DNA of 64,000 bases from Penicillus capitatus (lineage: Eukaryota > Plantae > Chlorophyta). This document shows, piece by piece, positions 3,077 through 64,000 of this stretch. A program made the translations under genes and the position numbers. The notes beneath the pieces are model-generated. The model was not told the origin of the DNA. It saw only the letters and a program-made list of their open reading frames with translations, and made no database searches. Every line of letters begins with the position of its first letter. Within the stretch, counting starts at the first letter, position 1. The stretch is taken from positions 515,411-579,410 of the forward strand of contig OZ287708.1 of the NCBI GenBank assembly GCA_965649825.1, in the 5' to 3' direction.

Positions 3077-4495
3077 TTACCGTTGGTGACGCAAGATGTC
3101 AGGAGTGATGTCATGAACTGACGAAAGACCGCATAGCAAGAGATCCTTGGCAAGCTCTTTTTTGATATCCTCAACAATCTCCACAGCCTTTTCGACACCG
3201 CTCGCAGCAAGGGCATAGAGGATGGGTCTCCCTATCAACACGGCTGATGCTCCCATAGCCAGTGCCTAGAAACGATGTGACATATTCTCCTCCAGGCAGA
3301 TCACAAAATCACTTTGATGATGTCCGTGCCTCTCTGAATGCCGCCATCGACCAAGATGGGTACCCTTTTGTTTACCACACGAGCTATCTCAGGTAAGATC
3401 TCGACTGGTGTCACGGCAGTATCGAGCTGTCGTCCACCGTGGTTAGAGACAATGATTCCATCGGCGCCATGTTTTATAGCTAACTCGGCATCTGCTGGAT
3501 GGAGAATGCCCTGAATGTCATAAGCACACAGTGGACATCGCCATATGGAAACAACGAATCGGTGAGAAGAGACATGCCTTGATAATGACCTTCACATCTA
3601 GAGCTTTCTTGGTGCGTAAGATGTCTCCCCATTCAAACATTGGTTTCATCTGTAGCAGCTCCTTATCCGACTGAACCAGATCTTTCCAGTATTTCTCTTT
3701 CCTGCCAGAAAAGGATATCGTGGACCACTGTAGACTGCACATACAGCGATGCACTGCATTTTTGTTTATGCAATAGACATTGGGTGACCTCTTCTTTCTG
3801 CTGCGTTCTCGATTGCCAAACACTGGCATATCTACCGTGTAAATGACGGTGCGGCATCCATGGCGATATGCATTCTCAACAATTCTGTCAGACACCTCGC
3901 GGCCACTGGATGCAGCAACAAAGGAGTTATAGGATGGGAAGCTGCTCCGTATCCAAGCTTGCTTTGACCCACCCAAGCATGTAGATTTGATGCAAGAGCA
4001 TTGGCGATCCTTCCATAGACGTTACAATATCTTCGATATCTTTCGATCCAAGCGTGGAGACACACTAAGAGCATTTGCCTGATCCACAGGAAGACACGCA
4101 GTAATGATACGCACTAGAGGAATTCCGCATTTCTCGGCTGCACGTGCTGTGGCGCATTCTCCATCCTCATGCACTAATCCATGGAGAGCCATGGGTGCAA
4201 TCATCACTGGAGCCGCCATCTTGTAACCTGAGAAACATTTCGCAAGTTTTCGCGAATCGCTCGGATAGGAGAAAGAGAGACCAAAGAGTGTGCAAGATAT
4301 GTCGGGATTCGTGATGTCTTCTGTAAGAACTCGGCACGCAATGTGAACGCTTCTCCAACATTCTCTGTTCTGTTGCTGTGTGATTTCGTCGTCGGCCCCG
4401 TCGTCTATGTATTCGAAAGCCTCTTCCGATATGCGTTCTCGTGCCTGAAGCCGCAATTCGGCGAATTTCGGAATAAAGGACGTCATGGAATCCAC
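3077..4495 (-). CDS. alpha-hydroxy acid oxidase family, copy 3
   Basis: FEYIDDG, APMALHG, HQIY, TVDMPVFGNRE, SNHGGRQLD, DGGIQRGTD; one GC-AG intron (3511-3577); ends LRHQR*. Confidence 0.92.
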
Positions 4496-7757: not shown

Positions 7758-9144
7758 TCATGGAAGTGGTTTATCGAAAAGGACGTCCGATGTTAATTCA
7801 TCGACACATGAACAGCCACAGAGTATGAGGCCGCGGTCAAACTCATCTTTAATGCCCTCGATGACTTCAACAACCTTATCTGTACCACCCACTGCCAGAG
7901 CGTAAAGAATGGGCCGGCCGATTAAGACAGCCGTGGCACCCATGGCCAGAGCCTAGACCAACCGGACGATGGAAGAATGGCATTCAGAGGCGGTGTCCTT
8001 GCCTTAATGATGTCAGTCCCTCTTTGGATCCCGCCATCGACCAAAATCGGAATTCTTTTGTTCACCGCCGTTGCGATTCGAGGCAAGACGTCCATTGCTG
8101 TCACAACCGTGTCCAATTGTCTACCCCCGTGATTCGATACAATGATGCCATCGGCGCCGTGTTCGACAGCCAAGACGGCATCTTCTGGATGCAGAATACC
8201 CTAGGTTGTCACAAAATGTCGCACATCTCCGTTTCCAACGGAACAGACCTTGATCAGAACTTTGACATCGACAATGTCCTTTATCCATTTCACAACGCTC
8301 CAATCGGAATCGACGATACCTTCCATGAAGAATTTTACAAAATCCTCTGATGACTCGGCATGCATGCTCCAATCATTTCTTTTGAAAATTGCAAAATTGG
8401 CGTCGCTGATGTCAAACCTGAGAATCGGTAACTGTAACAACGCCAGACACTCGTGCGTATCTTACTTGTTTTCGACGTCCTTTTCTCTGTTCCCCATAAC
8501 AGGAGCATCCACAGTCAATATCACGCATCGGCATCCTTGCTGATATGCATTCCGCAAAAAACTCTTCATGAACGATTCATCCCTGTGACCGAAAACAGCA
8601 GTTCATTCTGTCACCGATGATCGACAACGATCCAGACTTTAGATAATAGATCTGTTGGAAAAGTGCAGATTTGCAGCCAGAGGCCATGATATCTGCGAGA
8701 TCTTTCGAACTAAACATCGAGACGCACTGCATGCGTTCCAATACAGAAAGCACAAGAAATGTTGTTCTTACTAGAGGTATTTCGCACTGTTCTGTTGCAC
8801 GTGCTGTCTCGCATTCGCCCTCTTTGTGCAGCCATCCATGTGATGCCATTGGAGCAACGATCAGAGGAGCAGCGAGTTTGGTGCCTGGCAGGAGAATATG
8901 AAATCTTGCGCATTCTTAATCCGGACTCACCGAAGAGTGTGCAGGACGTATCCGCTTTAACAGAATTGCGCAAAACGCGTGTCACCAATCTCAATTCACG
9001 CCACGCTTTGCGATTGCGCCACATTGTGATCTCGTCGTCAGCGCCACCGTCGACATAATCGAAGAACTTCTTCGGCACGATGGCTCGGGCTTGTTCGCGT
9101 AGAAGAGCAAATTTAGGAATGAGAGCTTGCATTTCATTCTTCAT
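7758..9144 (-). CDS. alpha-hydroxy acid oxidase family, copy 5
   Basis: FDYVDGG, APMASHG, QQIY, TVDAPVMGNRE, SNHGGRQLD, DGGIQRGTD; last intron GC-AG (7953-8002); ends DKPLP*. Confidence 0.92.
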
Positions 9145-10098: not shown

Positions 10099-13000
10099 AT
10101 GAGGCGCGTCTCCGTCGTGACACGGCTGAAACCGCGTGTCCTTTTGAGCACACTTGCGCGTTCGAACGCGGACTCTTTTATCCGACATTGTCCCTGCTCA
10201 TTGAGATCCTCTCGTATACATTCTGCCATTCGGATTACGTGTCCCCTTTCGGCGAACCACGACGATAACGCAACAGATATGGCTGGAGGTCAGCGATTGA
10301 AACAGACAGTTCTCGGAAACAGAGGAAAGGATGAAGAAGCGCCCCATCGCCGTGGCGGACGAAAGCGAGCAACGCAGGTGACCTTCCACACTTCGATCGA
10401 ACGCGTAGTAACTCTCTGTCTTCCATGAACAGCTGCACGGACCCACTGCTAGCGACGGCGAACGGACAAAGCGTACGAAGGATGACAAAAAGCTCACCAC
10501 GGCACCTACAAAGGTTCGTCTTCCGATGACAAGACAGAATCTGAGAATCGTCTTCAACAGACGCCTTCGAGACGATCACGCAAAGCCAAAGAATTCAGTT
10601 TTCAGATGGGCCCGAAGTTAATGGAGACTCCGAAACTTCCAAAGAAAGGCGATACCGAATCAGACAGCGATATGAGGATGGAAATGACTGAAGAGAGTGA
10701 CAATCTGTCGAATATGTCTGCATCGTCTTCCGAGTCCATGGAGACCATAGGTGCGATCTGCTGCACCGTGTAATCGTGGTCGAATGATGTGACAGGAAGT
10801 GTTAGCATCCAAGCAGATGGCAGTACGAAGCGCATCTCAAAGGCACGACATCCAAGGCAATTGACAAGAGTAAGTCTACTGAATCGACTAAGCCGTTGAA
10901 CAAATCGTTGATGTGACATGTGGTGCAGACCGGAGCTCCAATTCGCAAGGCGTCGGATCTTTTGGCAGAAGCTTACGCTGTCTTCAATCCACGGGATCTA
11001 GCCTACTGGCAACCAGACGAGAATGTGCCTTACAAGTTTCTGGCAGATACTTTTGACCTGATAGAGGCAACAACGAAGAGATTGGAAATTACACGGCATT
11101 TGACTGAATGCTATCGATGCATATTAGAAATGACACCCTCAGATTTACTCCCTGCCATCTACCTCTGCATCAACAAAGTGGGACCGGCCCACGAAGGACT
11201 GGAACTTGGCGTCGGGGACTCGATATTGTACAAAGCGATCGCGAATGTGAGTGGAGGTGACAATGCCAGAATCCGTAAACAGTACGACAAAGATGGAGAT
11301 CTGGGATTGGTGGCCATGTCTCGCAAGAAAGGACAAGTTCGACTGATGGCTTTCGATAAGCTATCCATCTCTGGTGTCTTCAAAAAGTTTCTGGCAATCG
11401 CCAAAGATGGCGGCGAAAAATCGCAGGAGCGAAAGAGAGACAGGATCGAGAGTCTGCTCAATGCATCCAGAGACTCAGAGATCAAGTTCATCACAAGATC
11501 GCTTCAGGTAATTCTGTCAGTCTAATAACATCTGCACAGTCCTGTATGCGTGTCATGTGGTCTGCAGGGGAAACTAAGAATAGGACTGGCTGAGCAGACG
11601 GTGCTGCAATCCGTCGGACAAGCTTTCTTCATGCACCAGACACCTTCGAAGGACCAGGACACACTCATGCAGAGAATGGAAGAAGCTGTGGACCGCGTGA
11701 AACAAGCTTACAGCACCTGTCCATCCTACGACAAGGTACCCTACCTATCATCTGGTCTAGTGGTTTTGAAGGCAGATGACATGTCTAGTTGATTCCATGT
11801 CTACTGGATCATGGATTAAACGGATTGGAAGAACACCTGTCATTTACACCTGGCATTCCGGTCCAGCCAATGCTTGCGAAGCCGACGACTGGGATCTCAG
11901 AAGTGCTGGAAAAGTTCAGCGACACATCCTTCACCTGCGAATTCAAGTACGATGGTGAAAGATCGCAGATCCATGTTCTGCCAAACAGTAAGTCTCTTGC
12001 GTCTCAGTAACGGATCAAGTGATTTGCCTTTTTGCAGAGACGGTGCTGATCTATACACGCAACTCAGAGAACGTCACCGGGAAGTATCCAGATATCGTCC
12101 AGCAGATTCCAGCACATCTGAAACCGGAAGTCCAATCGGTCGTACTGGACTGTGAGACAGTCGCATTCGATACCCAACTGCAGAAGATCATGCCTTTTCA
12201 GGTGCTGTCCAGTTGACCCGTATGAAACTCTGATGAATCATGTGCTTTTCACAGAAACTGAGTACAAGAGCACGGAAGGATGTCACATTGGAGAGCATCA
12301 AAGTCCCTGTTTGCGTTTTCTGCTTCGACTGCCTCTACCTGAATGGAGAATCGTTGCTGGGACGGCCACTCACAGAGAGAAGAGCCTCCCTCTACAATGC
12401 TGTCAATTCAGAACCGGGTGTCATCCAATTCGCAGAGCATCAGATCTCCACCAATGTTGAGGAATTGCAGGTTGCCTTTATTCGCTGCCAGTTGTCCCAT
12501 CAGTCTCACACTGTGTATGTATTAGCATTTCCTAGACTTGGCCGTCGATGGCAGTACAGAAGGACTGATTGTGAAGACACTCGACTGCAGCTATGAGCCA
12601 TCGAAGCGCTCTGTCAACTGGCTGAAATTGAAGAAGGACTACTTGGATGGAGTGGGCGATTCGTTCGATCTCGTGGTCATTGGAGCATGGCATGGAAAAG
12701 GAAAAAGAACGGGCGTCTTTGGTTCGTTTTTACTTGCTGTATATGATCCGATCAATCAAGAGTACCAGAGCATTACAAAGATCGGAACAGGCTTCTCCGA
12801 AGAAGATCTGGAAACGCACACACGAAATCTCAGAGCATTGGAACTTTCAGAGCCAGCATCCAACTACAGGTGTCTCGTTTGCAACGAGTCATGCACTCAT
12901 CTCTCATGTACTGTAGCTATGGCGAGGCAGCTGTGCCAGATGTGTGGTTTGAGGCCAAGATGGTTTGGGAGGTCAAGGCAGCCGATCTCTCTATTAGTCC

Positions 13001-27897: not shown

Positions 27898-30005
27898 TCA
27901 GAGTTTGAGATTCTCGGCAAGAGAATCGGCCACTTTCCCAGCCCTTTTCGTTTGCCTCTGTCGGGCTCGTCTCTTTGATTTCTTGCTCTGCTTCTTACCT
28001 ATAGGCTTGACGGAATTGACACCCAACGCATTTACTGGTTCTCTCGTTTTCCTATCCAACACATGGCTGCTCTCCGGCAAGAAGAGGAACGTTTGATAAG
28101 AACTTGTATTTGTTATGTCCCTTAGCATGAAGGACGCGGACATGCAAATCGCCTGCTCACACGTGAAATTCAAGAAGGATTGCTTATTAAGGAAGCCATG
28201 CCTTGTGTGTCAGATGCAGCAGGGGAGGGATCTGTTGGAGGGGCATTGCTGAGACGCATGTCTGTTATGGCACGTTCAGTTTCGTTGATCTGTTCCTTCA
28301 TCTTGTGCACTTCAGCCATCCGACTGAATGCCTCCAATGCACCAGGAATGACAGTGGATGACGGCGGAGATCCCGAAGATGCAGGTGTGTGTGGTAGTTC
28401 CTCAATGGAGTCATCGACGATGGGATCATTCACACCCTCCAAAGAAAACTCTGCTGCCCAATTCTGTACAACCTGTACATCTGAAGCCGTTTGCTGCACC
28501 GGAGGCGTTTTGTAGAAGGGAATCTTGCCGTTGTTCCAATCCTGTACACACGAGAGTAAGTTCCATTCAACCATCAGATGAGATGGATCATGTTGTGCTA
28601 TCTATCACCTGGACAACGATTCTGGCAGCAGCCTCCGTATCTGGAATGCCGCCCTTTTTCAATTTTCCCATTTTGGCTGCAATGCATTGCAGAAAGGATG
28701 GCGCATTGTCAAAGTCTTCGATGCCATATACAGATTTCAGAGTCGATAACTCAACTTCGTTGCATATGGCTTCGACGAGACCGATCGGATCGGCGATTGC
28801 CTCTGTCGACACCACCCCCTGCAGAGTGCCATGTTTCCTCTCATAGATCACTCCAGGACTATCAAGCAGTCGTATTTGACTGTCGAGTTGCACTTCCTGA
28901 ATCGCCTTCGTTACACCTACGCACACATTCACCATACCTCTCATCTGTTATCGAGATGAACCGGGCCGGTTGCCGACGAGTGTCGCCTTTGATCGCTTCA
29001 GGCTGTTGATGACAGAACTCTTTCCCACATTGGGCACGCCTACCAGTCCGACAGTAATAGCCGATCGAATGTTTGCATGTCGTGTGTAGTTTTTTAGCAG
29101 CTGGATGAGATTGTCAGCTCCCAGACACACACTGCTTTTGCTCTCCATCGTTCTGTTGCGACTCTGTCCCAGATTTGCATTCTGTCTCTGAGTCGAACAT
29201 TTGAAAGCAATGGTCGGGGCGGACTGACGCAGAACCTTCAGCCAAGACTCCACGACATCTCTGGGGACCAAATCTATCAATGCACAAGATTCACGGCAGG
29301 GTTTGAGAATGATAGGAGTCGACCGATTTTGTTTAAGATAAAGACAAGTCGCTTCGGTGGTGTAAACTGATGCACAAAGGCCTCGACCTCAGACGAACGA
29401 CATCCATTTGGATCGCGTGCATCCAACACCTGCAGCACGACGTCCGCCAGTGAAACCACTTTTCTGAAATCTCTGTAGTGCTCGCGACCACCCACTGGAA
29501 CATCTCACATGACTAGGACACGACATTGCCTTTGGCTTAACAAACCGTCTGGTATGGCTGCTGTCTTTTCTTCTTCTTGGATTTCGGACACCGTTTCGTG
29601 ATCGGCTGCTCGTTTCTGAACTGCTTCGGCCAATGCCTCCATGTCATCGATCGCCATCTCTTCGTCCTTTCCCGCGGACATGTCACGTTCAGACACTTCC
29701 TCTCTTGGAGATGCTTGCGTTCCGTGGGCCTTGTTCTTCTCCTGTGCTTTCTTTTGATTTTTCTCAGCCAAGATACGATCTTTCTCAAACGCCATTTCCT
29801 TGATAAAGTCCTCTCGGAAGGGCCATGATGCGGGGACGCCTGGATCTTTGAGTGACGGAGTGGTGCCGAGAGCTTTTCTCTGTTTGGCCTTCAATCTTTC
29901 CTCCCTTCTCTGTTTTCGATGGTGTGCCTTCACTTTTTGAGCGATCTTATGCTTCTTCCGAATCGACGTCCGTTTGGATTTGGATTTGCTGCTGCGTTTC
30001 ACCAT
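27898..30005 (-). CDS. GNL3: nucleostemin-like circularly permuted GTPase
   Basis: MVKRSSKSKSKR..KDPGVPASWPF; DARDP, NKID, GVPNVGKSS, DSPG motifs. Confidence 0.93.
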
Positions 30006-30047
30006 GGTGCTCAAAATGGCCGCCGAAATGACACCATTGTGCTCATC

Positions 30048-31043
30048 ATGGAGTCTGAGAATCTCCACGCGACAGTCGCGAAATTGAGAGACCGCCAGGC
30101 GGAGCTCGCCGCGCGTCCAAGCGACCTCAAGAAGAAACATCAGTCCAAGAAACAGAAAACGCGCGATGAAGCTGGTTCGAAACTGTCTCCTGCTTCGAGG
30201 AAACGCGATGAATCGAAAGTCGAACGCGAAACGACGAAAGCAAAACTCCTCGCAACCCGCAAACAGCGCGGCGCAGCAGGGTTCGCACCAAAGAGTCGAA
30301 AATATACAGACCACTTAAACAAGCGCCTCAAAGATGTTATCTCCTGTCTCTTGGACAAACGTCATGATATGACAAAGGCTGAAATCTGTGCCTATCTGGA
30401 GGCCAAAAGAAAGGAAAAGAACAAAACAGATATGGGCAACGAAAAACACATAGATGAGGCTGATACAGAACTCTGGTCTGCCGTTTCAAATAATACAAAA
30501 ATTGAAGTGGTCTCGGGAGGCTGGCGATTCCGTTACCGGCCACAACATCATCACATCACTGATAAGGAGAAACTGTTGATGCATGTACGTAGACAGACGC
30601 AAGGAACGCCTTGGAAAGACATCTCAGATACGTACAAAGAAGTGGAAGCCGATCTCGAGGCTTTGGTCAAAGACAAGAAGATCTTTGTGATCGAGAATCC
30701 TGACATGGAAGATCGAGTGATCTTTTGGAACGATCCCACGCAAGGCCTTTTCAAAGAATGGGGTGGGAAACATGAGTGTGTGTGCAGTGTGGAAGGTGTG
30801 GATTTGAGTGAGCAGATGTTGGAGTTGTGGAGATTGACGCAACCTCCATCGGAAAATCGTATATACGAGGAGCTGATCAAGAAATCGGGCATCGTACCTG
30901 CACCGCGAAAAGAGGTTCGAAAACGCGAACCTGTGCAGAAGGTGCCAAGAGAGAGGAAGCCAAGAGACTTCAAACACAGGAAGATTACAAATGTGCATCT
31001 GCCAGAGCTGCTGGCCGCTCACCAGCCAGAGCAAATAGATTGA
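30048..31043 (+). CDS. transcription factor IIE beta subunit
   Basis: Basic N-terminus; winged-helix-like region RLKDVISCLL..RYRPQHHHITDKEKLL; LIKKSGIVP..KITNVHL C-terminus. Confidence 0.75.
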   Translation: MESENLHATVAKLRDRQAELAARPSDLKKKHQSKKQKTRDEAGSKLSPASRKRDESKVERETTKAKLLATRKQRGAAGFAPKSRKYTDHLNKRLKDVISCLLDKRHDMTKAEICAYLEAKRKEKNKTDMGNEKHIDEADTELWSAVSNNTKIEVVSGGWRFRYRPQHHHITDKEKLLMHVRRQTQGTPWKDISDTYKEVEADLEALVKDKKIFVIENPDMEDRVIFWNDPTQGLFKEWGGKHECVCSVEGVDLSEQMLELWRLTQPPSENRIYEELIKKSGIVPAPRKEVRKREPVQKVPRERKPRDFKHRKITNVHLPELLAAHQPEQID

Positions 31044-57167: not shown

Positions 57168-57892
57168 ATGACACTGTGTGCCATTTGCCATCAGCACACA
57201 CCGGAGCGGCACCAGGCATTCCTTGACACATGCTTTCATGTGTTCTGCTACCAAGTTACTCAGCGATGAGCCACAATACATTCGAATGTGTCTCTGCTGC
57301 AGTGCATCGTCCAATGGAGTGCTCAACAACGCGATAGGAATGAAGAAATATTGCAGTGTCCTCTATGTCGTGCCGAGTATCGTTCTGTGTTTTATAGTTG
57401 TATCCAACACAGCTTCCGGTCAGCTTCTTTCTCTCTGTGGTCAGCAGATGAGATGGTATCCAGATTAGGCGGCACTGGTTCGTTGACAACAGGGAGGACG
57501 AGGCAACGTTCCTGACACCAGGCCATATGCGACGACGCGCTGTTTATCTCTTAGAAAATACAGCGGAGATAACTCCTATTCGGCGACCCGTTTTCGCGTT
57601 TCTCAAGGAGCGTCTCGTTACAGATGAACAGGCGCAGAAATGGATCCGCCGAGAGCTCGAGGCATTGTTGATGATAGACGACGTGGAGTTTCTCCTTGAT
57701 CTCGTGACGCATGTGGTGCGGGATGTCAGCAAACAAGAAGCAGAGAGAAAACTGCACCTCGCTATCGAGCCTTTTCTTCACGAACACGCTGGTCTCTTTG
57801 CAGCGGAGCTCGGATCTTTTCTCGCTTCCGGTCTGAATATGGTTGGCTACGATCACCAACGACTGGCCGCTGAAGAAAACAACAGTCTGTAA
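57168..57892 (+). CDS. C3HC4 RING protein (Topors/PWI-like C-terminus)
   Basis: CAIC..CFHVFCYQ|CI..CPLC; QKWIRRELEALL..PFLHEHAGLFAAEL. Confidence 0.85.
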
Positions 57893-57913
57893 TGCATTTT
57901 TGCTGACTGTGAG

Positions 57914-58849
57914 ATGACACGATTGACACACAGAGTCTCCACGACTGCACCGACCTTCGCTGCTTGGAGACCAAGAAGAAGACACGTATGGGTCTCCAGA
58001 GCGCAAGACAGACAGAGCGACGTGAGCGAAACGCACGACGAGATGTCACGGCGCACCGCAATTGCTATTCCGATTCTTGCGTCGTCCTTCATCTTCGCGG
58101 CACCACGTTCGTCCCGTGTTCGTAAATTTCCCTCGACAGACGTGTTTGTTCTACAGCGGTGTTTAGTCGAGAAGAAGGGATATATAACTTTGAGGCCAAG
58201 ATGAAGGGTTCGATGCAATCTTTGTCGAAGTACAGAGATCAAGTTCTTGTGATACTGAACGTCGCCAGCGAATGACCCCTTCAGAACCTCAATTATCCAG
58301 GATTGAGGACACTGCGTGAGAAATACGGATCGCAAGGATTTAATCTCATCGCCTTTCCTTGCAATCAATTCGGCCAACAAGCTCCTGGAACGAGCGAAGA
58401 AGAACGGGCCTATGCCATCAAGAAATTTGGTTTTGAATTTGACGTCTACGTACATTGACTCTTCTTGGCTTGCGAGCAGACGACATCACACCTTTCTGTC
58501 ATTCAGGACAAAATCGAGGTGAATGGATGGAAAGCACATCCGCTATACAAATATCTGAAGAGAGAGCAGCCCATGTCCTATCCACTGTATCAATATCCAA
58601 AACGTGCGAATGAAGTGGGAGAGATTGAATGGAACTACACAAAGTTCCTGATCGATCGTCAGGGCAGAGTCGTTCGGCGATACGGACCAGCATTGGATCC
58701 CCTTGCGTTCGAGGGCGATGTGAGTGCGGATTCGGCAATGCTCTTTCTGCTGATGTGTGATGTGACAGGTGGTACAACTGCTCCGAGGACGTCCACTGCT
58801 TCCGCCAGAATGCTTAACAGATCCAGATGAAGAGGCCTGTCAATTTTAG
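57914..58849 (+). CDS. GPX: selenocysteine glutathione peroxidase with plastid transit peptide
   Basis: In-frame TGA at 58273-58275 in NVASE-U; AFPCNQFGQQ, IEWNYTKFLIDRQG; SECIS in 3' UTR. Confidence 0.93.
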
Positions 58850-58879
58850 ATGTGTAGGACTGCATGTCGATGTCGCTTA

Positions 58880-58932
58880 GTGACAGTTAATGATGGAATT
58901 CTCGGGAAGAGATTCCGGATGTCGTCTGTCAC
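58880..58932 (+). promoter_or_regulatory. SECIS element
   Basis: Stem I GUGACAG/CUGUCAC; core AUGAU/GGAU; stem II GGAAU(U)CUC/GAGAUUCC; loop GGGAA; starts ~30 nt after the GPX stop. Confidence 0.8.
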
Positions 58933-60209
58933 AGACACGACTAAAGCGTTCTCGCACTATCGTTGACATAGTTACAGACTTTTTGGTTTCGCTATCATAA
59001 GCACTTTATCGAGATAGACCTTTTTGTTCGTCGGATCACATTTAACCTCGGACAGCTATTCTCAGCATTGGCGGCAGGAAAGATCGACACTGTCTATTGA
59101 AAAGTGCGTCGTTACAAATCGGCGATAGTGACTTATTCAATTGCGGGTAATCGAGAAGGTCCAATCGATTGAAATCAAACACATCGGAATCTATCGATTT
59201 CCAGTGAAATGAAATCTCAGCCAAATTCGTACAACCATGACTCTTGTAAGAGTGTACGTTGTTATTTATCGGAGTCGACGACCTGGATAGTGAAGAAATT
59301 AACTCTCTAATCGACTCGAATTCACGAAAAGCCAGCTAGCTGACCGACGTTGTCAAGAACTGCAATCTTGTTGGTTTCCTGGGGACCTATCGGTGTTACG
59401 ATCTTTCATTTGTTTGCTCATCATCGACAGCGTTTTTCTTGTCGAGACTACCGCTTAAATACGAATTGTTATCGATGAGTCTCAATAGTGTCGCCGAAGA
59501 GCACACTTGAAAAGAGAAAGTTTCCTGTGCCGTGCGTCTACGTTGTTCGCCCAAGGTCGAATGTCCGATAATGGCGATCAGTTAATCGAAGAAAGTGTTT
59601 TCACGAATCTTTTTCTGTCGATGACGAATCCATCAACGATGGACGCATGGATGTCGCGATTGCGCGTACTACAGTCCCTTAACCTTACCGTGACGAATCT
59701 TTCGAATCGATCGAAAATTGAATCACCGCCTTCATCGAGATGATCATTCAATCCTGTTATTTATGATCCAGTCGGCTTCGATCAATTCGAACGAAATGCC
59801 AGTTTTGAGTTGCATGTATCTTCCAATTTTAATCGCTATGTGGTGATGACATCGAGATCGAGAGCGATCTTTCTCCCGAATACAAAACTCAGACTGGACG
59901 TCATCGCGTTTTAATAAACGTAAACGTGCGATCGTCATTTTAAGTCGGCGAATCGATCTCTGATCATTCAAAATCGATTAATCAGAGAGGGAGCACAGTG
60001 GTCGGTGGTGTTCATCGAAGCATGATCGACGTCGATGAAGAATCGATTGACCGATTCTCGACAAATTTACTGTCGTACGCGTCGTGTCGATAGTTCTCTC
60101 GCCGGTGACGTGTTGTTTCGACGAATTGCACAGATCCCACAGGAGGCATTGCTATCAATGCGGCAGGACATCCATCCCTTCCATTCATTGACAAGATTCT
60201 ATTTCGTTC

Positions 60210-61080
60210 TTAATTCCCCTGATAGTTCGGTTTTCTTTTCTCAAACAAAGCCCTCACACCTTCTCGGCGATCCTCTCGCGCAATTAGAAGTCGCAGCAAA
60301 TTGGCATTCTGTTCATCGTCTTCCCCATTGTCTATTGCTTTCTTTGCAGCTCTGAGGGCTAGAGGCGCACTCAACTGCATCTTTTGAGCCAATTGAATCG
60401 CCCGTTTTTCGACACCATCATCGACACAGTCATCTAGCAATCCAACTTTCAGCGCTTCGGCACTGCCAATACGTCGTCCAGTAAAAATCAGTTCCTTTGC
60501 AACAGAAAAGCCAACAAATCTCGGCAAACATTTCATCGTGATGCGAGTGGGGATCATTCCCAGACGTGTTTCGGGGAATGCGAACACAGCTTTTGTATCT
60601 CCAAGGCGAAAATCGCAACACAGGGCTAACTCAGCACCAGATCCAATTGCAATGCCTTCCACGCAAGCAATCGTTGGAATCGGAAATCGCAAAAGCTTTT
60701 CCAGAACGTCCTGCGTTTTGAGGTTCACCACCATCACCTCCTCGTCACTCCACGATCCATATGCCTCCAGATCCAGTCCTTAAGTATGTGTGTGTCAAAT
60801 ACGAAACGTCATCTGTCACATCACCTTTGGAAAACGTTCCTGGAACGAGGCTTCTCAGCAGGACAGTCCGAAGGGACCAGCGCTCTGTTATGGCACCAAG
60901 AACGTGATCGAGCTCCTCCAGAAACTGGACATTGACGTCGTTATTCCCAGCTGCATTGTGTAGAACGATCTCGGCGATGTTTTCGTCGCGATGGACGACA
61001 TCGATGTATTTGCGTCGAATGCGTTTGAGTCCGAGCGTCGTGACAGAGCGTGCAAATCGATTAAATCGAATCCGCGTCAT
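60210..61080 (-). CDS. enoyl-CoA hydratase/isomerase (AUH-like), mitochondrial presequence
   Basis: PTIACVEGIAIGSGAELALCCDFR, FPETRLG, AKELIFTGRRI, EGVRALFEKRKP. Confidence 0.9.
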
Positions 61081-62224
61081 TCAAATCGATCGTTTCGCCA
61101 ATGAGATCGTCTAGTATCGATTCCTGTTCCGGACCGATCATCGTACGGAAAAACTCATCATTCGATGATCGATTGCTTTCGAATTCTGCCATCGCATCCG
61201 ATTTACGTCGAGATCCTCTGGCAAGTTTTTCAATCGGATCCATTTCTGCTTCAGTGTGCTTCTCGGGTTTCTTTGCGGCAGGAACAGGCCATTGGGGATT
61301 CTCTCCTCCTATGATAAGGCTCTTGATCCCTACATACTCTTTGCTGAATGCTGTAAGCATGTTGATCAAAACATCGAGGCACAGCTCATCGGCTGTCCCC
61401 ATATCCACCCTACATACTCGTCATCAGAGGAAACAGTAATTCAGATGTAGACCTGAAGCGTCCCCAAAGACCATTCGTTTCGAGGGGATCCATCTCGTGA
61501 AGAAATGCATCCATGGCTTCATTCGAACATTCTTGATCGTATGCAAAGCAGTTAACAGAATCGTAAGCGCGCATAGAGATCTAAGCGAAAGAGCAGAGGT
61601 CTCACTCACATCAACGATCTGCCGAATTCTGCATGTCACCTGAAGATTGGCAGAATTGAATCCTCCCAGTTTTCCGACAACAAACCAGCTGCGGAGGACT
61701 TCTGTCAGCATATCTATATCCGAGACAGATGGAGCAGAATAGAACTGCATCCATATCTATCACACCAGCATCGACAATCGAAAAGGTGATGACAAGAGAT
61801 CGGCTCGACCCAGAGATTAAAGTGCTCGATCTCGCGAAATCGAACATCCAACGGAATGTTAACTCCAGTTCGTGCTTGTACGATTTCCTGTTCCTTTTTC
61901 TCCTGTTCTTCTCGAATCTACAACACCTCGTCTCTTGAAACAAGCCTCGATGAAAATCGTTGTCTACCTTCTGCAAAATGCGTTCGGGGTCGCCATCGGT
62001 GCCGTCCACCACACGAGCTGCCCCTTCATCATATGGCGCATCCGCTATTAAATCTCTGCCGATCAAGAAACGTCTGTCCGTTCGATGAAGAGCGATCGAC
62101 GATACCTGACCCATCGTGGCTTATCTACAGCCGATACACGAACGGGGTGACGAAAGAGAGGGACTAAACGTCGTATACGCACACATCTATATCGCACCGA
62201 GGACGTCTGCGAAGGGCACTTCAT
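61061..62224 (-). CDS. DUF3531-family protein, plastid transit-like N-terminus
   Basis: VLRSWFVVGKLGGFNSANLQ, DMGTADELCLDVLINML..EYVGIKSLIIGG (family recalled from memory). Confidence 0.78.
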
Positions 62225-62238
62225 TTTACAGAAATCGA

Positions 62239-64000
62239 TCACCGTTTCGATTTACCAAGTCGCCTTTCTTTACTTCGACGACGACGTTTAGATTCTTTCT
62301 TAGCCTTCTTTTTCGCCCTTCCTTTCTTCAACGTCTTTAACAGTTTCCTGAACTCGGATGTCGACAGTCCTTTGAGGACTTCTTCATCGAATGTCTCTTC
62401 TTTGCGTTCCTTCTTGCTCTTTTTCTTTTTACTGGGCTTCTCTTCTTCCACCTCGGATTCTTCGGAGGAAACGTTTAGGCGCTTTCGATTAGTGCTCGAC
62501 GGATCGTTGGTCGTTTCTTTAATCTCTGAAAGATCGATCAAATCGGTTTCTTCCTGCATGTGACGACGATTGTGTTCAGGAGACATCTCTTCCTCTTCCT
62601 CTTCCTCTTCATCCTCATCTTCCTCGGAAGCATCGAAAATTGACTTGAAAATATCGAGAGGTGGCTCTGTGTATTCTGGAGGCGGCAAAGAAATCTAAAC
62701 GGCATAACATAAAGGGGTGAAGGCAAAGGTCGTGTGATGTGACTGACGTCAATGTCGTCTGCCACAGAGATTGTTGGACCTGCAGTCTCTGCTGAAGCGC
62801 GCGGCTCTTCTTCTTGCACTTCATCCAAAGCAGATTCATATGTCATGAACTTGGAGGTGGTTTCTGATTCTCGAGGCATTCCTTTCAACGGATCGAGGAC
62901 ATTGAATCGTTTATAGAGTAAAGGAACGGGATGCCAGTCGACAAAAGAACGAACGGGTGTGCATTCTCCTGGCTGAGGTGCTCTGTCAACAGATTTGTCT
63001 GCCTCTGGCTGCTGTTCACTCTTGGGCTTCGGTGCTCTGAGGCCTGCTGTACTCTCTTCCATGTGCAGCGTTCCTTCCGCGCTGCCTTTGACAAAATTCG
63101 ATTTCAATGCCGATCGGACTCTGTCGCGGTCTTCTTCAGGAACACCTCCAATAAAAGGATGCGAGACAGTGCGGCTGGCAATGGGTGTTTCCTGGATTCT
63201 CTCATCGCCCAGCAGAAATCCACGGTCGTCTGCTGTAAGAGGTGCCTCTCTCAGACCGATGCAGTGCACACCGAGTTTCTGAAAAGTCACTTTGACGTCC
63301 AGGAGTTTCCACCTGTAATACTCGGACCCTTCTCCACCGAAGAGAAAACCGAAACCATCCTCTCCCTGATGTTTTTGGCGGACAAATTCTTCGGACATCA
63401 TTCCTCCCTTTGCAACGAATACTGCTAAACTGTCAATCGTTCTTTTGAGATTTTCGTCGACGGGAAGCTTGGGGGCTGGAACAGAAGACTGCATGGATTT
63501 CACAGGATCTCCTTCGTTAGAAGGTTGCATGTCTTCATGCCTCCCTGTGAAATCTGTCGGAACGATGGGAAGCTGAAACGCTTTCTTCTCGTGCAGCACA
63601 GATCCCAGACAAAATCCTGCCACCAAAGATCCCTTCTTCCCTGTGGGCTTCTGTCCGATTCTCTTTGGCCCTCTGTCGCCGTCACATCATCAGACAGAAG
63701 GCCATACTAGACGGACATACTTTTCGATATGCCGTGTGTGTTTGCCTCCGTCGTCGGAATGATCAGACATATCGTAGTAGTTTATGTGATCATGGGCACT
63801 CTCTACGTAGTCTCCGATCTCACCGAACGTGTCTGTCTCTTCCAGTACGCCCACACCAAAAGCAATGCCGCGCGATCTCTTGATCGAAGACTTCGGCGAG
63901 GTGCCTTCTCCTGTCTTGTGTCTTTCGAAGGCACGGGATCCTCGAAACGGATCGAATCCCAATCCTTGGACATTCGTCTAAGAAACATCCATTTCATTTC
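62239..64000 (-). CDS. G-patch/SURP protein TOUGH/GPATCH1-like; 5' part outside the window
   Basis: GIAFGVGVLEE..Y, SURP-like IDSLAVFVAKGG..FLFGGEGSEYYRWKL, W.P.PLLYKRFNV.DP, P.P.DIFKSIF, K/R-rich tail. Confidence 0.85.

Follow-up and report, generated by a model that had tools for sequence, protein, structure and literature searches.

Do neighbouring genes whose coding sequences abut or overlap on one strand of a nuclear genome share a messenger RNA, or does each keep its own? The question is raised by a locus at the end of a 64,000-nucleotide (nt) stretch of the genome of the green alga Penicillus capitatus (contig OZ287708.1, positions 515,411 to 579,410; hereafter the window), where three nuclear genes lie head to tail on the minus strand and encode, in order, a TGH-like protein, a DUF3531 protein and an enoyl-CoA hydratase. 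The first two coding sequences (CDSs) are 14 nt apart and the second and third overlap by 20 nt. The genes are functionally unrelated: the TGH-like protein is a splicing/RNA-processing factor, the DUF3531 protein is of plastid type, and the hydratase is a methylglutaconyl/enoyl-CoA hydratase of mitochondrial type. The locus appears to be an extreme local case in a genome where almost all the DNA separating same-strand genes has disappeared, and does not look like a functional operon. From the sequence comparisons below we judge it somewhat more probable than otherwise that the genes are transcribed into separate mRNAs whose ends lie inside the neighbouring genes, so that the transcripts overlap in the sense orientation.

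The two junctions

The TGH-like frame terminates with TGA at 62241-62239 on the minus strand. The DUF3531 gene follows, with its ATG at 62224-62222 and its terminal TAA at 61063-61061, and the hydratase begins at ATG 61080-61078, in a frame that differs from that of DUF3531. The spacer between the first two genes contains TGTAA (62230-62226 (-)), a chlorophyte poly(A) signal motif, and this is the sole TGTAA on the minus strand within 59800-63000. In the hydratase frame a TGA stands immediately 5′ of ATG 61080 and the next methionine is residue 101, within the domain. To the C terminus of DUF3531 the overlap contributes six poorly conserved residues (NDADSI).

62238-62225 (-): 14-nt spacer between the TGH-like and DUF3531 genes, TCGATTTCTGTAAA, read from the sequence
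61061..61080 (-): 20-nt CDS overlap between DUF3531 and the hydratase, in different frames; 19 of its 20 bases are identical in L001 and L002, and the region is identical in L003

A first-pass annotation made from the sequence had described an operon-like chain. Its positions for the TGH stop, the 14-nt gap, the DUF3531 start and stop, the hydratase start and the 20-nt overlap are correct to the base. It was also right about the TGTAA in the spacer and the lack of any other in-frame hydratase ATG before the domain, and its domain identities agree with the Surp, PF12049 and PF00378 matches that we obtained.

The close relatives used for comparison are contigs from metagenome or sequencing-run assemblies. 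L003, from a different sample, has 98.9% DNA identity to the window, and L001 and L002, from a third sample, have ~85-88%; all three have the same geometry. The more diverged contigs are L005, L006, L014, L015 and the L004/L013 pair, whose hydratases share 53-63% protein identity with that of the window. To judge from the two proteins, the nearest named relative of the alga is Bryopsis sp. KO-2023, which provides the best named match for both DUF3531 (52% identity) and the hydratase (43%).

Gene models on either side of the junctions

The TGH-like gene extends past the end of the window at 64000 and is represented here by its 3′ part.

62748..63674, 5′ limit approximate (-): penultimate exon, with a Surp/SWAP module (Pfam Surp, E=3.7e-8; tblastn, 55-60% identity to L005 and L006)
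62695..62747 (-): last intron, 53 nt, GT..AG, placed by the frame shift between open reading frames (ORFs) 62538-63626 and 62239-62688
62239..62694 (-): last exon, K/R/E-rich tail ending with TGA 62241-62239; motif and stop position are kept in L005 and L006

The placement of the last intron is supported by the comparison with L005 and L006, in which the conserved block resumes at 62694. The tail motif STSEFKKLLKTLKK.RAKK is conserved, in both contigs the stop is at most a few residues away from this position, and nonsynonymous and synonymous divergence of the last exon from L001 are pN 0.095 and pS 0.346. Beyond the window the same gene could be followed through L003, L005 and L006: its N terminus begins MGETRRGFLGTPIE, its CDS exceeds 2 kb, and it encodes a DUF1604 domain and a weak G-patch. 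The single protein so combines an N-terminal DUF1604 domain, a G-patch and a Surp module, the architecture of the TGH/SUGP type.

The DUF3531 gene was rebuilt as six exons and 302 codons (909 nt), with introns of 50, 50, 53, 59 and 43 nt. Once spliced, it matches PF12049 in one stretch at 167.8 bits (gathering cut-off 25), over profile positions 2-140 of 143.

62106..62224 (-): exon 1, from ATG 62224, encoding a basic, acid-poor N-terminal extension; the KP.WVRDL motif across the intron matches Bryopsis P0121 and P0124
62056..62105 (-): intron 1, 50 nt, phase 2; GT..AG and phase are kept in L001, L005 and L006, with 80% identity to L001
61968..62055 (-): exon 2, from the gene model
61918..61967 (-): intron 2, 50 nt; 63% identity to L001, with an indel; donor GC in L001/L002
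61810..61917 (-): exon 3, start of the domain, from the gene model and Pfam match
61757..61809 (-): intron 3, 53 nt; its removal restores LWIWMQF, similar to LWIWLQF/LWVWFEF in homologues
61640..61756 (-): exon 4, from the gene model and Pfam match
61581..61639 (-): intron 4, 59 nt; gives an NLQ-to-HEM spacing of 27 residues, against 26-28 in homologues; donor GC in L001/L002
61453..61580 (-): exon 5, from the gene model and Pfam match
61410..61452 (-): intron 5, 43 nt, from the sequence and the L001 alignment
61061..61409 (-): exon 6, end of the domain and a 70-residue tail, with TAA at 61063-61061; C-terminal motif ILDDLIGETIDL is kept in the clade

The start of this gene determines the size of the first gap, which would be 124 nt if translation began at ATG 62114. 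That start is ruled out. The 50-nt phase-2 intron (62105-62056) joins DKPRWV to RDLIADAPYDEG, recreating KPFWVRDLEQDAPYDE of the Bryopsis protein (KKPFWVRDLEQDAPYDED), and because this conserved motif is split by the first intron, with its beginning in the upstream exon, the start must be ATG 62224, 8 codons 3′ of an in-frame stop. The N-terminal extension is presumed to be a plastid transit peptide. Other intron boundaries were considered and dropped: a 32-nt first intron in favour of 50 nt on homologue alignments, a 65-nt third intron (acceptor 12 nt further downstream) because the 53-nt form alone restores LWIWMQF, and a 29-nt fourth intron because the 59-nt form alone gives the homologue-like NLQ-to-HEM spacing. 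The GC donors at window positions 61967 and 61639 in the ~86%-identical relative (L001/L002) amount to two GC-AG introns in one small gene.

At the other end of the gene, the 70-residue tail is coding to its stop (pN 0.11 and pS 0.35 against L001, no indels), and the motif (L/F/M)DDLI..(I/V)D(L/F) occurs within the last 5-16 DUF3531 residues in six lineages. This closes one route by which the first-pass annotation had allowed for ordinary spacing, namely that DUF3531 ends earlier through an unseen intron. The other route, a spliced upstream start for the hydratase, fails as well: the hydratase N terminus can be aligned from the first methionine in six lineages (M..R..TTLG(L/V)KRIRRK(Y/F)(I/V)), and in both the window and L004 the ATG follows an in-frame stop.

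The hydratase itself was rebuilt as two exons (61080-60825 and 60778-60210), and the spliced product matches PF00378 (ECH_1) in one stretch at 162.7 bits, over profile positions 3-250 of 251.

60825..61080 (-): exon 1, from ATG 61080; N terminus basic and without acidic residues (MTRIRFNRFARSVTTLGLKRIRRKY), from the gene model and Pfam
60779..60824 (-): intron, 46 nt, starting GTGATGTGAC; 91% identical to L001
60210..60778 (-): exon 2, ending with TAA 60212-60210 (Pfam ECH_1, E=9.4e-37)

An intron occupies the same position in L005, L006, L014 and L015 and is absent in L004. The closest named matches are methylglutaconyl-CoA hydratase/ECHDC2 proteins (35-43% identity), the C terminus KRKPNYQGN aligns with KRKPNFTGQ of Bryopsis, both followed directly by the stop, and the sequence retains the glutamate of each of two conserved crotonase motifs, GAELAL and FPETRLG. 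A loop at residues ~160-175 (60520-60560 (-)) reads TRITMKCL in the window and TRIAMKCL in L001; most crotonases have G(G/A)GGTQRL here, and L004 has IGGGTQRL. Neither gene is decaying, because whole-gene dN/dS against L001 is 0.17 for DUF3531 and 0.13 for the hydratase; neither CDS contains indels.

In some ulvophytes TAA and TAG are read as glutamine. A non-standard code of this kind was dismissed here: TAA ends the hydratase at its conserved C terminus, and the gene models are without in-frame TAA or TAG. The window belongs to an ordinary algal nucleus with the standard genetic code.

Conserved gene order with variable spacing

All contigs of sufficient length preserve the order PPIase - TGH - DUF3531 - hydratase, and the chain is present in six lineages. 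Conservation reaches further in L005, with which the window is colinear from 48.6 to 64 kb (~15 kb) at 35-80% amino-acid identity. The distances between the genes vary.

DUF3531 stop to hydratase ATG, -20 nt: window, L003, L001, L002
DUF3531 stop to hydratase ATG, -17 nt: L014 (ATGCATCGAGCTTGTAA)
DUF3531 stop to hydratase ATG, -4 nt: L005 and L015 (GAATGA)
DUF3531 stop to hydratase ATG, +54 nt: L013+L004
DUF3531 stop to hydratase ATG, +305 nt: L006
TGH stop to DUF3531 ATG, 14 nt: window, L001
TGH stop to DUF3531 ATG, 13 nt: L005
TGH stop to DUF3531 ATG, ~1190 nt: L006

The 14-nt spacer is identical to that of L001 at 13 of its 14 bases, and the 13-nt spacer of L005 is AATCGATTTTGTA, whose TGTAA extends into the ATG. 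In Bryopsis, DUF3531 and the hydratase are 1.25 Mb apart, each with other neighbours and with spacers of 0.5-2 kb. Conservation of the overlap in relatives, which had been proposed as a check, is therefore found at close range (L003, L001 and L002), whereas the spacing differs in the deeper lineages. The overlap is thus not a conserved feature in itself, and junction spacing changes readily. All eight hydratases form one clade (support 100/99), in which the tree leaves the order of the spacing changes unresolved.

The +54-nt junction is assembled from two contigs. A protein search with the last DUF3531 exon contributed L013 only, and positions 1-30 of L004 abut positions 1351-1380 of L013 by exactly 30 nt (k-1). 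L004 was considered as a transcript that would prove the hydratase 5′ end. This was dismissed: the adjoining L013 retains all DUF3531 introns, so the run is genomic. The hydratase of the L004/L013 lineage (ERR4592244) has lost an intron that is present in five other lineages. Its 54-nt spacer holds two short upstream ATGs, encoding MLYKRQFETMRF and MRF, each followed by a stop, and ends with a TAA flush with the hydratase ATG.

Compaction of same-strand neighbours

The three-gene chain is typical of this genome rather than exceptional, because every same-strand junction that we resolved is equally tight: all five, a small sample, fall between -20 and +46 nt, and L005 is likewise tight. Besides the two junctions above, these are:

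PPIase to TGH gap, 41 nt: L003
PWI to glutathione peroxidase (GPX) gap, 21 nt, with the PWI stop TAA within cTGTAA: window 57890-57916 (+)
Kelch-repeat stop to presequence protease (PreP) ATG, 46 nt: window 52016-51965 (-); ~49 nt in L005

At the PWI-GPX junction of L005 (~11615-11625 (-)) stop and start overlap, as tcATGATG. The view that a same-strand CDS overlap is very rare in nuclear genomes accordingly needs qualifying for this one, in which tight tandem junctions are the rule. Convergent gaps are larger: in L005 and L014 they measure ~110-230 nt, the methylase and GPKOW genes are ~400 nt apart, and 1.36 kb of unique sequence separates the hydratase from GPX in the window.

One mRNA or several

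If each gene is transcribed separately, signals for ending and starting transcripts must lie within the neighbouring genes. A candidate poly(A) signal is the TGTAA of the TGH/DUF3531 spacer, which is common to the window, L001 and L005. In chlorophytes, including ulvophytes, UGUAA peaks ~17 nt before the cleavage site and is found in roughly half or more of mRNAs (PMC1868727); for this reason the TGH 3′ end is expected inside the first DUF3531 codons, and the DUF3531 mRNA would consequently need a start site farther upstream, within TGH.

The lengths of the upstream ORFs point the same way. In known green-algal polycistrons the upstream ORFs are short (medians 291-600 nt) and ribosomes pass them by leaky scanning (PMC7896298, PMC11291117), and UGUAA is depleted after the upstream ORFs of true polycistrons (PMC7896298). 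At the present locus the ORFs are colinear and a short distance apart (14 and -20 nt), as in those systems, but the upstream ORFs are neither short nor AUG-poor: the hydratase AUG comes after 889 nt of DUF3531 CDS that contain 30 AUGs, and the TGH CDS is even longer (>2 kb), which rules out a polycistron read by leaky scanning. UGUAA is present after the first ORF, and its place after the second differs among the lineages, being absent for at least 260 nt in the window and L001 and present in L005 (+10), L006 (+110), L014 (overlapping the stop) and L015 (~+33).

We suggest the following course of events. The three genes would already have been neighbours in the common ancestor of the clade, and would since have been pushed together, to 14 nt at one junction and to -20 nt at the other. 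Each gene would still be expressed from a separate mRNA with a cap and a poly(A) tail. Cleavage of the TGH mRNA would occur ~10-30 nt past the conserved TGTAA, in the first DUF3531 codons, and the DUF3531 and hydratase mRNAs would begin, with short leaders, in the last exon of the preceding gene. Control signals would thus be written into coding sequence and neighbouring transcripts would overlap in sense, and the 20-nt overlap would have no function of its own, being one of the interchangeable junction states -20, -17, -4 and +54. The short spacers throughout (all five junctions) and the gene order conserved across diverged relatives are what a compacted genome displays.

Several findings weigh against separate mRNAs and speak for co-transcription, in which DUF3531 and the hydratase, and possibly TGH, would share one mRNA and ribosomes would reach the downstream ORF through termination-coupled reinitiation: after its release at the DUF3531 stop, the 40S subunit would move back 4-20 nt to the AUG close by. 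First, neither the window nor L001 has a TGTAA within 260 nt 3′ of the DUF3531 stop, as a DUF3531-hydratase bicistron predicts. Second, synonymous divergence in the last 30 codons before the downstream ATGs, where an internal promoter would lie, is not reduced below the ~0.35 seen gene-wide (TGH pS 0.43, DUF3531 pS 0.30; a test of low power, with 6-9 synonymous changes), so there is no footprint of embedded promoter elements. Third, the GAATGA stop/start overlap in two lineages (-4, L005 and L015) and tcATGATG at the L005 PWI-GPX junction resemble termination-reinitiation sites, and the -17 and -20 overlaps can be added to them. Fourth, the tandem gaps (<=46 nt) are far shorter than the convergent ones (~110 nt to 1.36 kb), an asymmetry that needs no further explanation under co-transcription. 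Polycistronic nuclear mRNAs do occur in green algae, and some Auxenochlorella stop and start codons overlap (PMC7896298, PMC11291117).

We nevertheless consider this shared transcript the less probable arrangement, though one to be taken seriously. It would require efficient reinitiation after ORFs of 302 codons or more, whereas reinitiation efficiency is reported to drop with upstream ORF length and green-algal experiments favour leaky scanning (PMC11291117). The conserved TGTAA between TGH and DUF3531 stands against it, as does the TGTAA at or soon after the DUF3531 stop in four other lineages, and the relatives with spacings of +54 and +305 nt express the same pair without an overlap. RNA structure at the junctions is ordinary (z-scores -0.23 and +0.97). 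If co-transcription did operate, the tight tandem junctions of this genome would mark widespread polycistrons unlike the leaky-scanning type. Its fullest form would be a lineage that has lost separate promoters for most same-strand neighbours, with long unrelated genes on shared mRNAs and reinitiation at GAATGA, tcATGATG, -17 and -20; we find this doubtful. If true, it would be a nuclear polycistrony distinct from both the leaky-scanning type of Chlamydomonas and spliced-leader operons.

Spliced-leader operons occur in nematodes, kinetoplastids and tunicates, and to our knowledge spliced-leader trans-splicing has not been reported in chlorophytes. A polycistronic precursor cut in that manner into monocistronic mRNAs would fit the overall arrangement, many same-strand genes separated by tiny spacers, and nothing more. 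At the -20, -17 and -4 junctions no cut leaves both CDSs whole: the hydratase AUG is inside the DUF3531 CDS, so an acceptor would lie within DUF3531 instead of sparing it. The junctions and their surroundings contain no tRNA or Rfam RNA, and the window as a whole contains no spliced-leader RNA or other Rfam family. Such processing is very improbable.

The weakest explanation, an annotation or assembly artefact or a decaying gene with one overlapping frame unused, could appeal to the six poorly conserved DUF3531 residues in the overlap and to the hydratase loop, where TRITMKC replaces the usual GGGTQR, but is largely refuted by the recurrence of the same frames and geometry in three further contigs from two other samples, the low dN/dS without indels, the end-to-end coverage of both Pfam domains, the retained catalytic-motif glutamates and the N and C termini conserved across six lineages.

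The term operon-like is thus not supported, in view of the conserved TGTAA, the long AUG-rich upstream ORFs, the relatives with normal spacers and the unrelated functions. The first-pass annotation had framed the matter correctly as a choice between a tricistronic mRNA and promoters and poly(A) sites written inside neighbouring coding exons, and the evidence leans to the second.

The motifs ATCGATTT/AATCGATT, which occur near both junctions, were considered as promoter or terminator elements and dropped, since their enrichment does not exceed the excess of ATCGAT across the genome. No RNA-derived sequence of the clade was found among the contigs (L004 and L013 are genomic), and a search of JGI metagenome contigs that used the alignment of hydratase N termini yielded a single match, spurious and apparently bacterial. 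Neither TGH nor hydratase sequence occurs in the distant DUF3531 transcript contigs L007-L012; these are monocistronic, have normal untranslated regions (UTRs) and are uninformative for the clade.

Other features of the window

The window also encodes DNA ligase I, TFIIE-beta, GNL3L, GPKOW, catalase, a CCT-motif protein, SfsA, PreP and glutathione peroxidase. The N terminus of PreP is MARQLATTIARSG in the window and MMVRVATTIARSG in L005. The 1.36-kb stretch between the convergent hydratase and GPX genes (58850-60210) is without a counterpart in L005, where the gap is ~110-190 nt; it aligns patchily with L001 at 70-78% identity and contains no repeats within the window and no long ORF.

The 8-mer GATGTGAC occurs 19 times in the window against 3.8 expected, for example at 60822 (-), 63688 (-), 18427 (+) and 58759 (+). 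It is located in short introns, 15-40 nt before an AG and sometimes at the donor itself (GTGATGTGAC), and could serve as a branch site or in intron definition. Identity to L001 is 91% in the hydratase intron, which contains the 8-mer, compared with 63-80% in the DUF3531 introns.

At 29505-31043 a GNL3L-like ORF (-) and a TFIIE-beta-like ORF (+) overlap head to head by ~400 nt, as ORFs only. The ORFs at 4022-4495 (-) and 8710-9144 (-) have near-alike N termini (IPKFA.LR.QAR...DDGADDEIT) and, from their sequence, look like paralogous FMN-dependent glycolate-oxidase-type genes in many short exons.

Relation to known compact and polycistronic systems

The closest parallels are nucleomorphs and microsporidia. 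In nucleomorphs the average spacer is 44-132 bp long and each genome has 33-44 overlapping gene pairs (PMC3017389), and in genomes of both kinds spacers of tens of nucleotides, occasional CDS overlaps and conserved gene order occur together (PMC3017389, PMC6009652). The present locus shares with them the tens-of-nucleotide spacers, some CDS overlap, a gene order kept despite divergence and neighbours that are functionally unlinked. Transcripts are likewise expected to start or end in neighbouring genes, which here is predicted from DNA. Unlike those relic or parasite genomes, this is a full algal nucleus on contigs of 0.9-2.2 Mb that encodes transcription factors as well as proteins of mitochondrial, peroxisomal (catalase) and plastid type, retains many introns of 43-59 nt and has convergent gaps that are not tiny.

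The polycistrons of Chlamydomonas, Chromochloris and Auxenochlorella (Gallaher et al. 2021, PMC7896298; PMC11291117) resemble the locus in their same-strand nuclear genes, tiny inter-ORF distances and conserved collinearity; in Auxenochlorella the inter-ORF median is 40 nt and some stop and start codons overlap. They differ in that the upstream ORFs here are at least 909 nt long with at least 30 AUGs, a conserved TGTAA follows the first ORF, and the shared transcript is putative.

Termination-reinitiation sites are a third comparison. Viral examples are known, and termination-reinitiation at overlapping stop and start codons has reportedly been reviewed by Sherlock et al. 2023 (cited in PMC11291117). 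As at such sites, stop and AUG overlap or are separated by no more than ~20 nt (GAATGA, -17, -20); unlike at such sites, the spacing is not conserved, reaching +305 nt in the clade, and the shared mRNA is hypothetical here. No ribosome-tethering element was seen upstream, though no search was aimed at one. Taken against these systems, the locus is best read as compaction of the nucleomorph and microsporidian kind in the full nuclear genome of a chlorophyte lineage.

Implications

Should the three genes be transcribed separately, this would be a free-living, intron-rich eukaryote in which promoters, start sites and poly(A) sites work inside neighbouring CDSs, an arrangement otherwise documented mainly in nucleomorphs and microsporidia. 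The spacings of +305, +54, -4, -17 and -20 nt at one orthologous junction would offer a stepwise view of a spacer disappearing. Should the genes be co-transcribed instead, green-algal polycistronic expression would extend to long ORFs and to another mechanism of translation. In practical terms, gene finders that forbid overlaps or expect UTRs between genes will mis-annotate such genomes, and prokaryotic-style ORF calling already fragments these genes in public collections. The locus is valuable chiefly because it draws attention to a lineage in which the architecture of transcription merits study at the RNA level.

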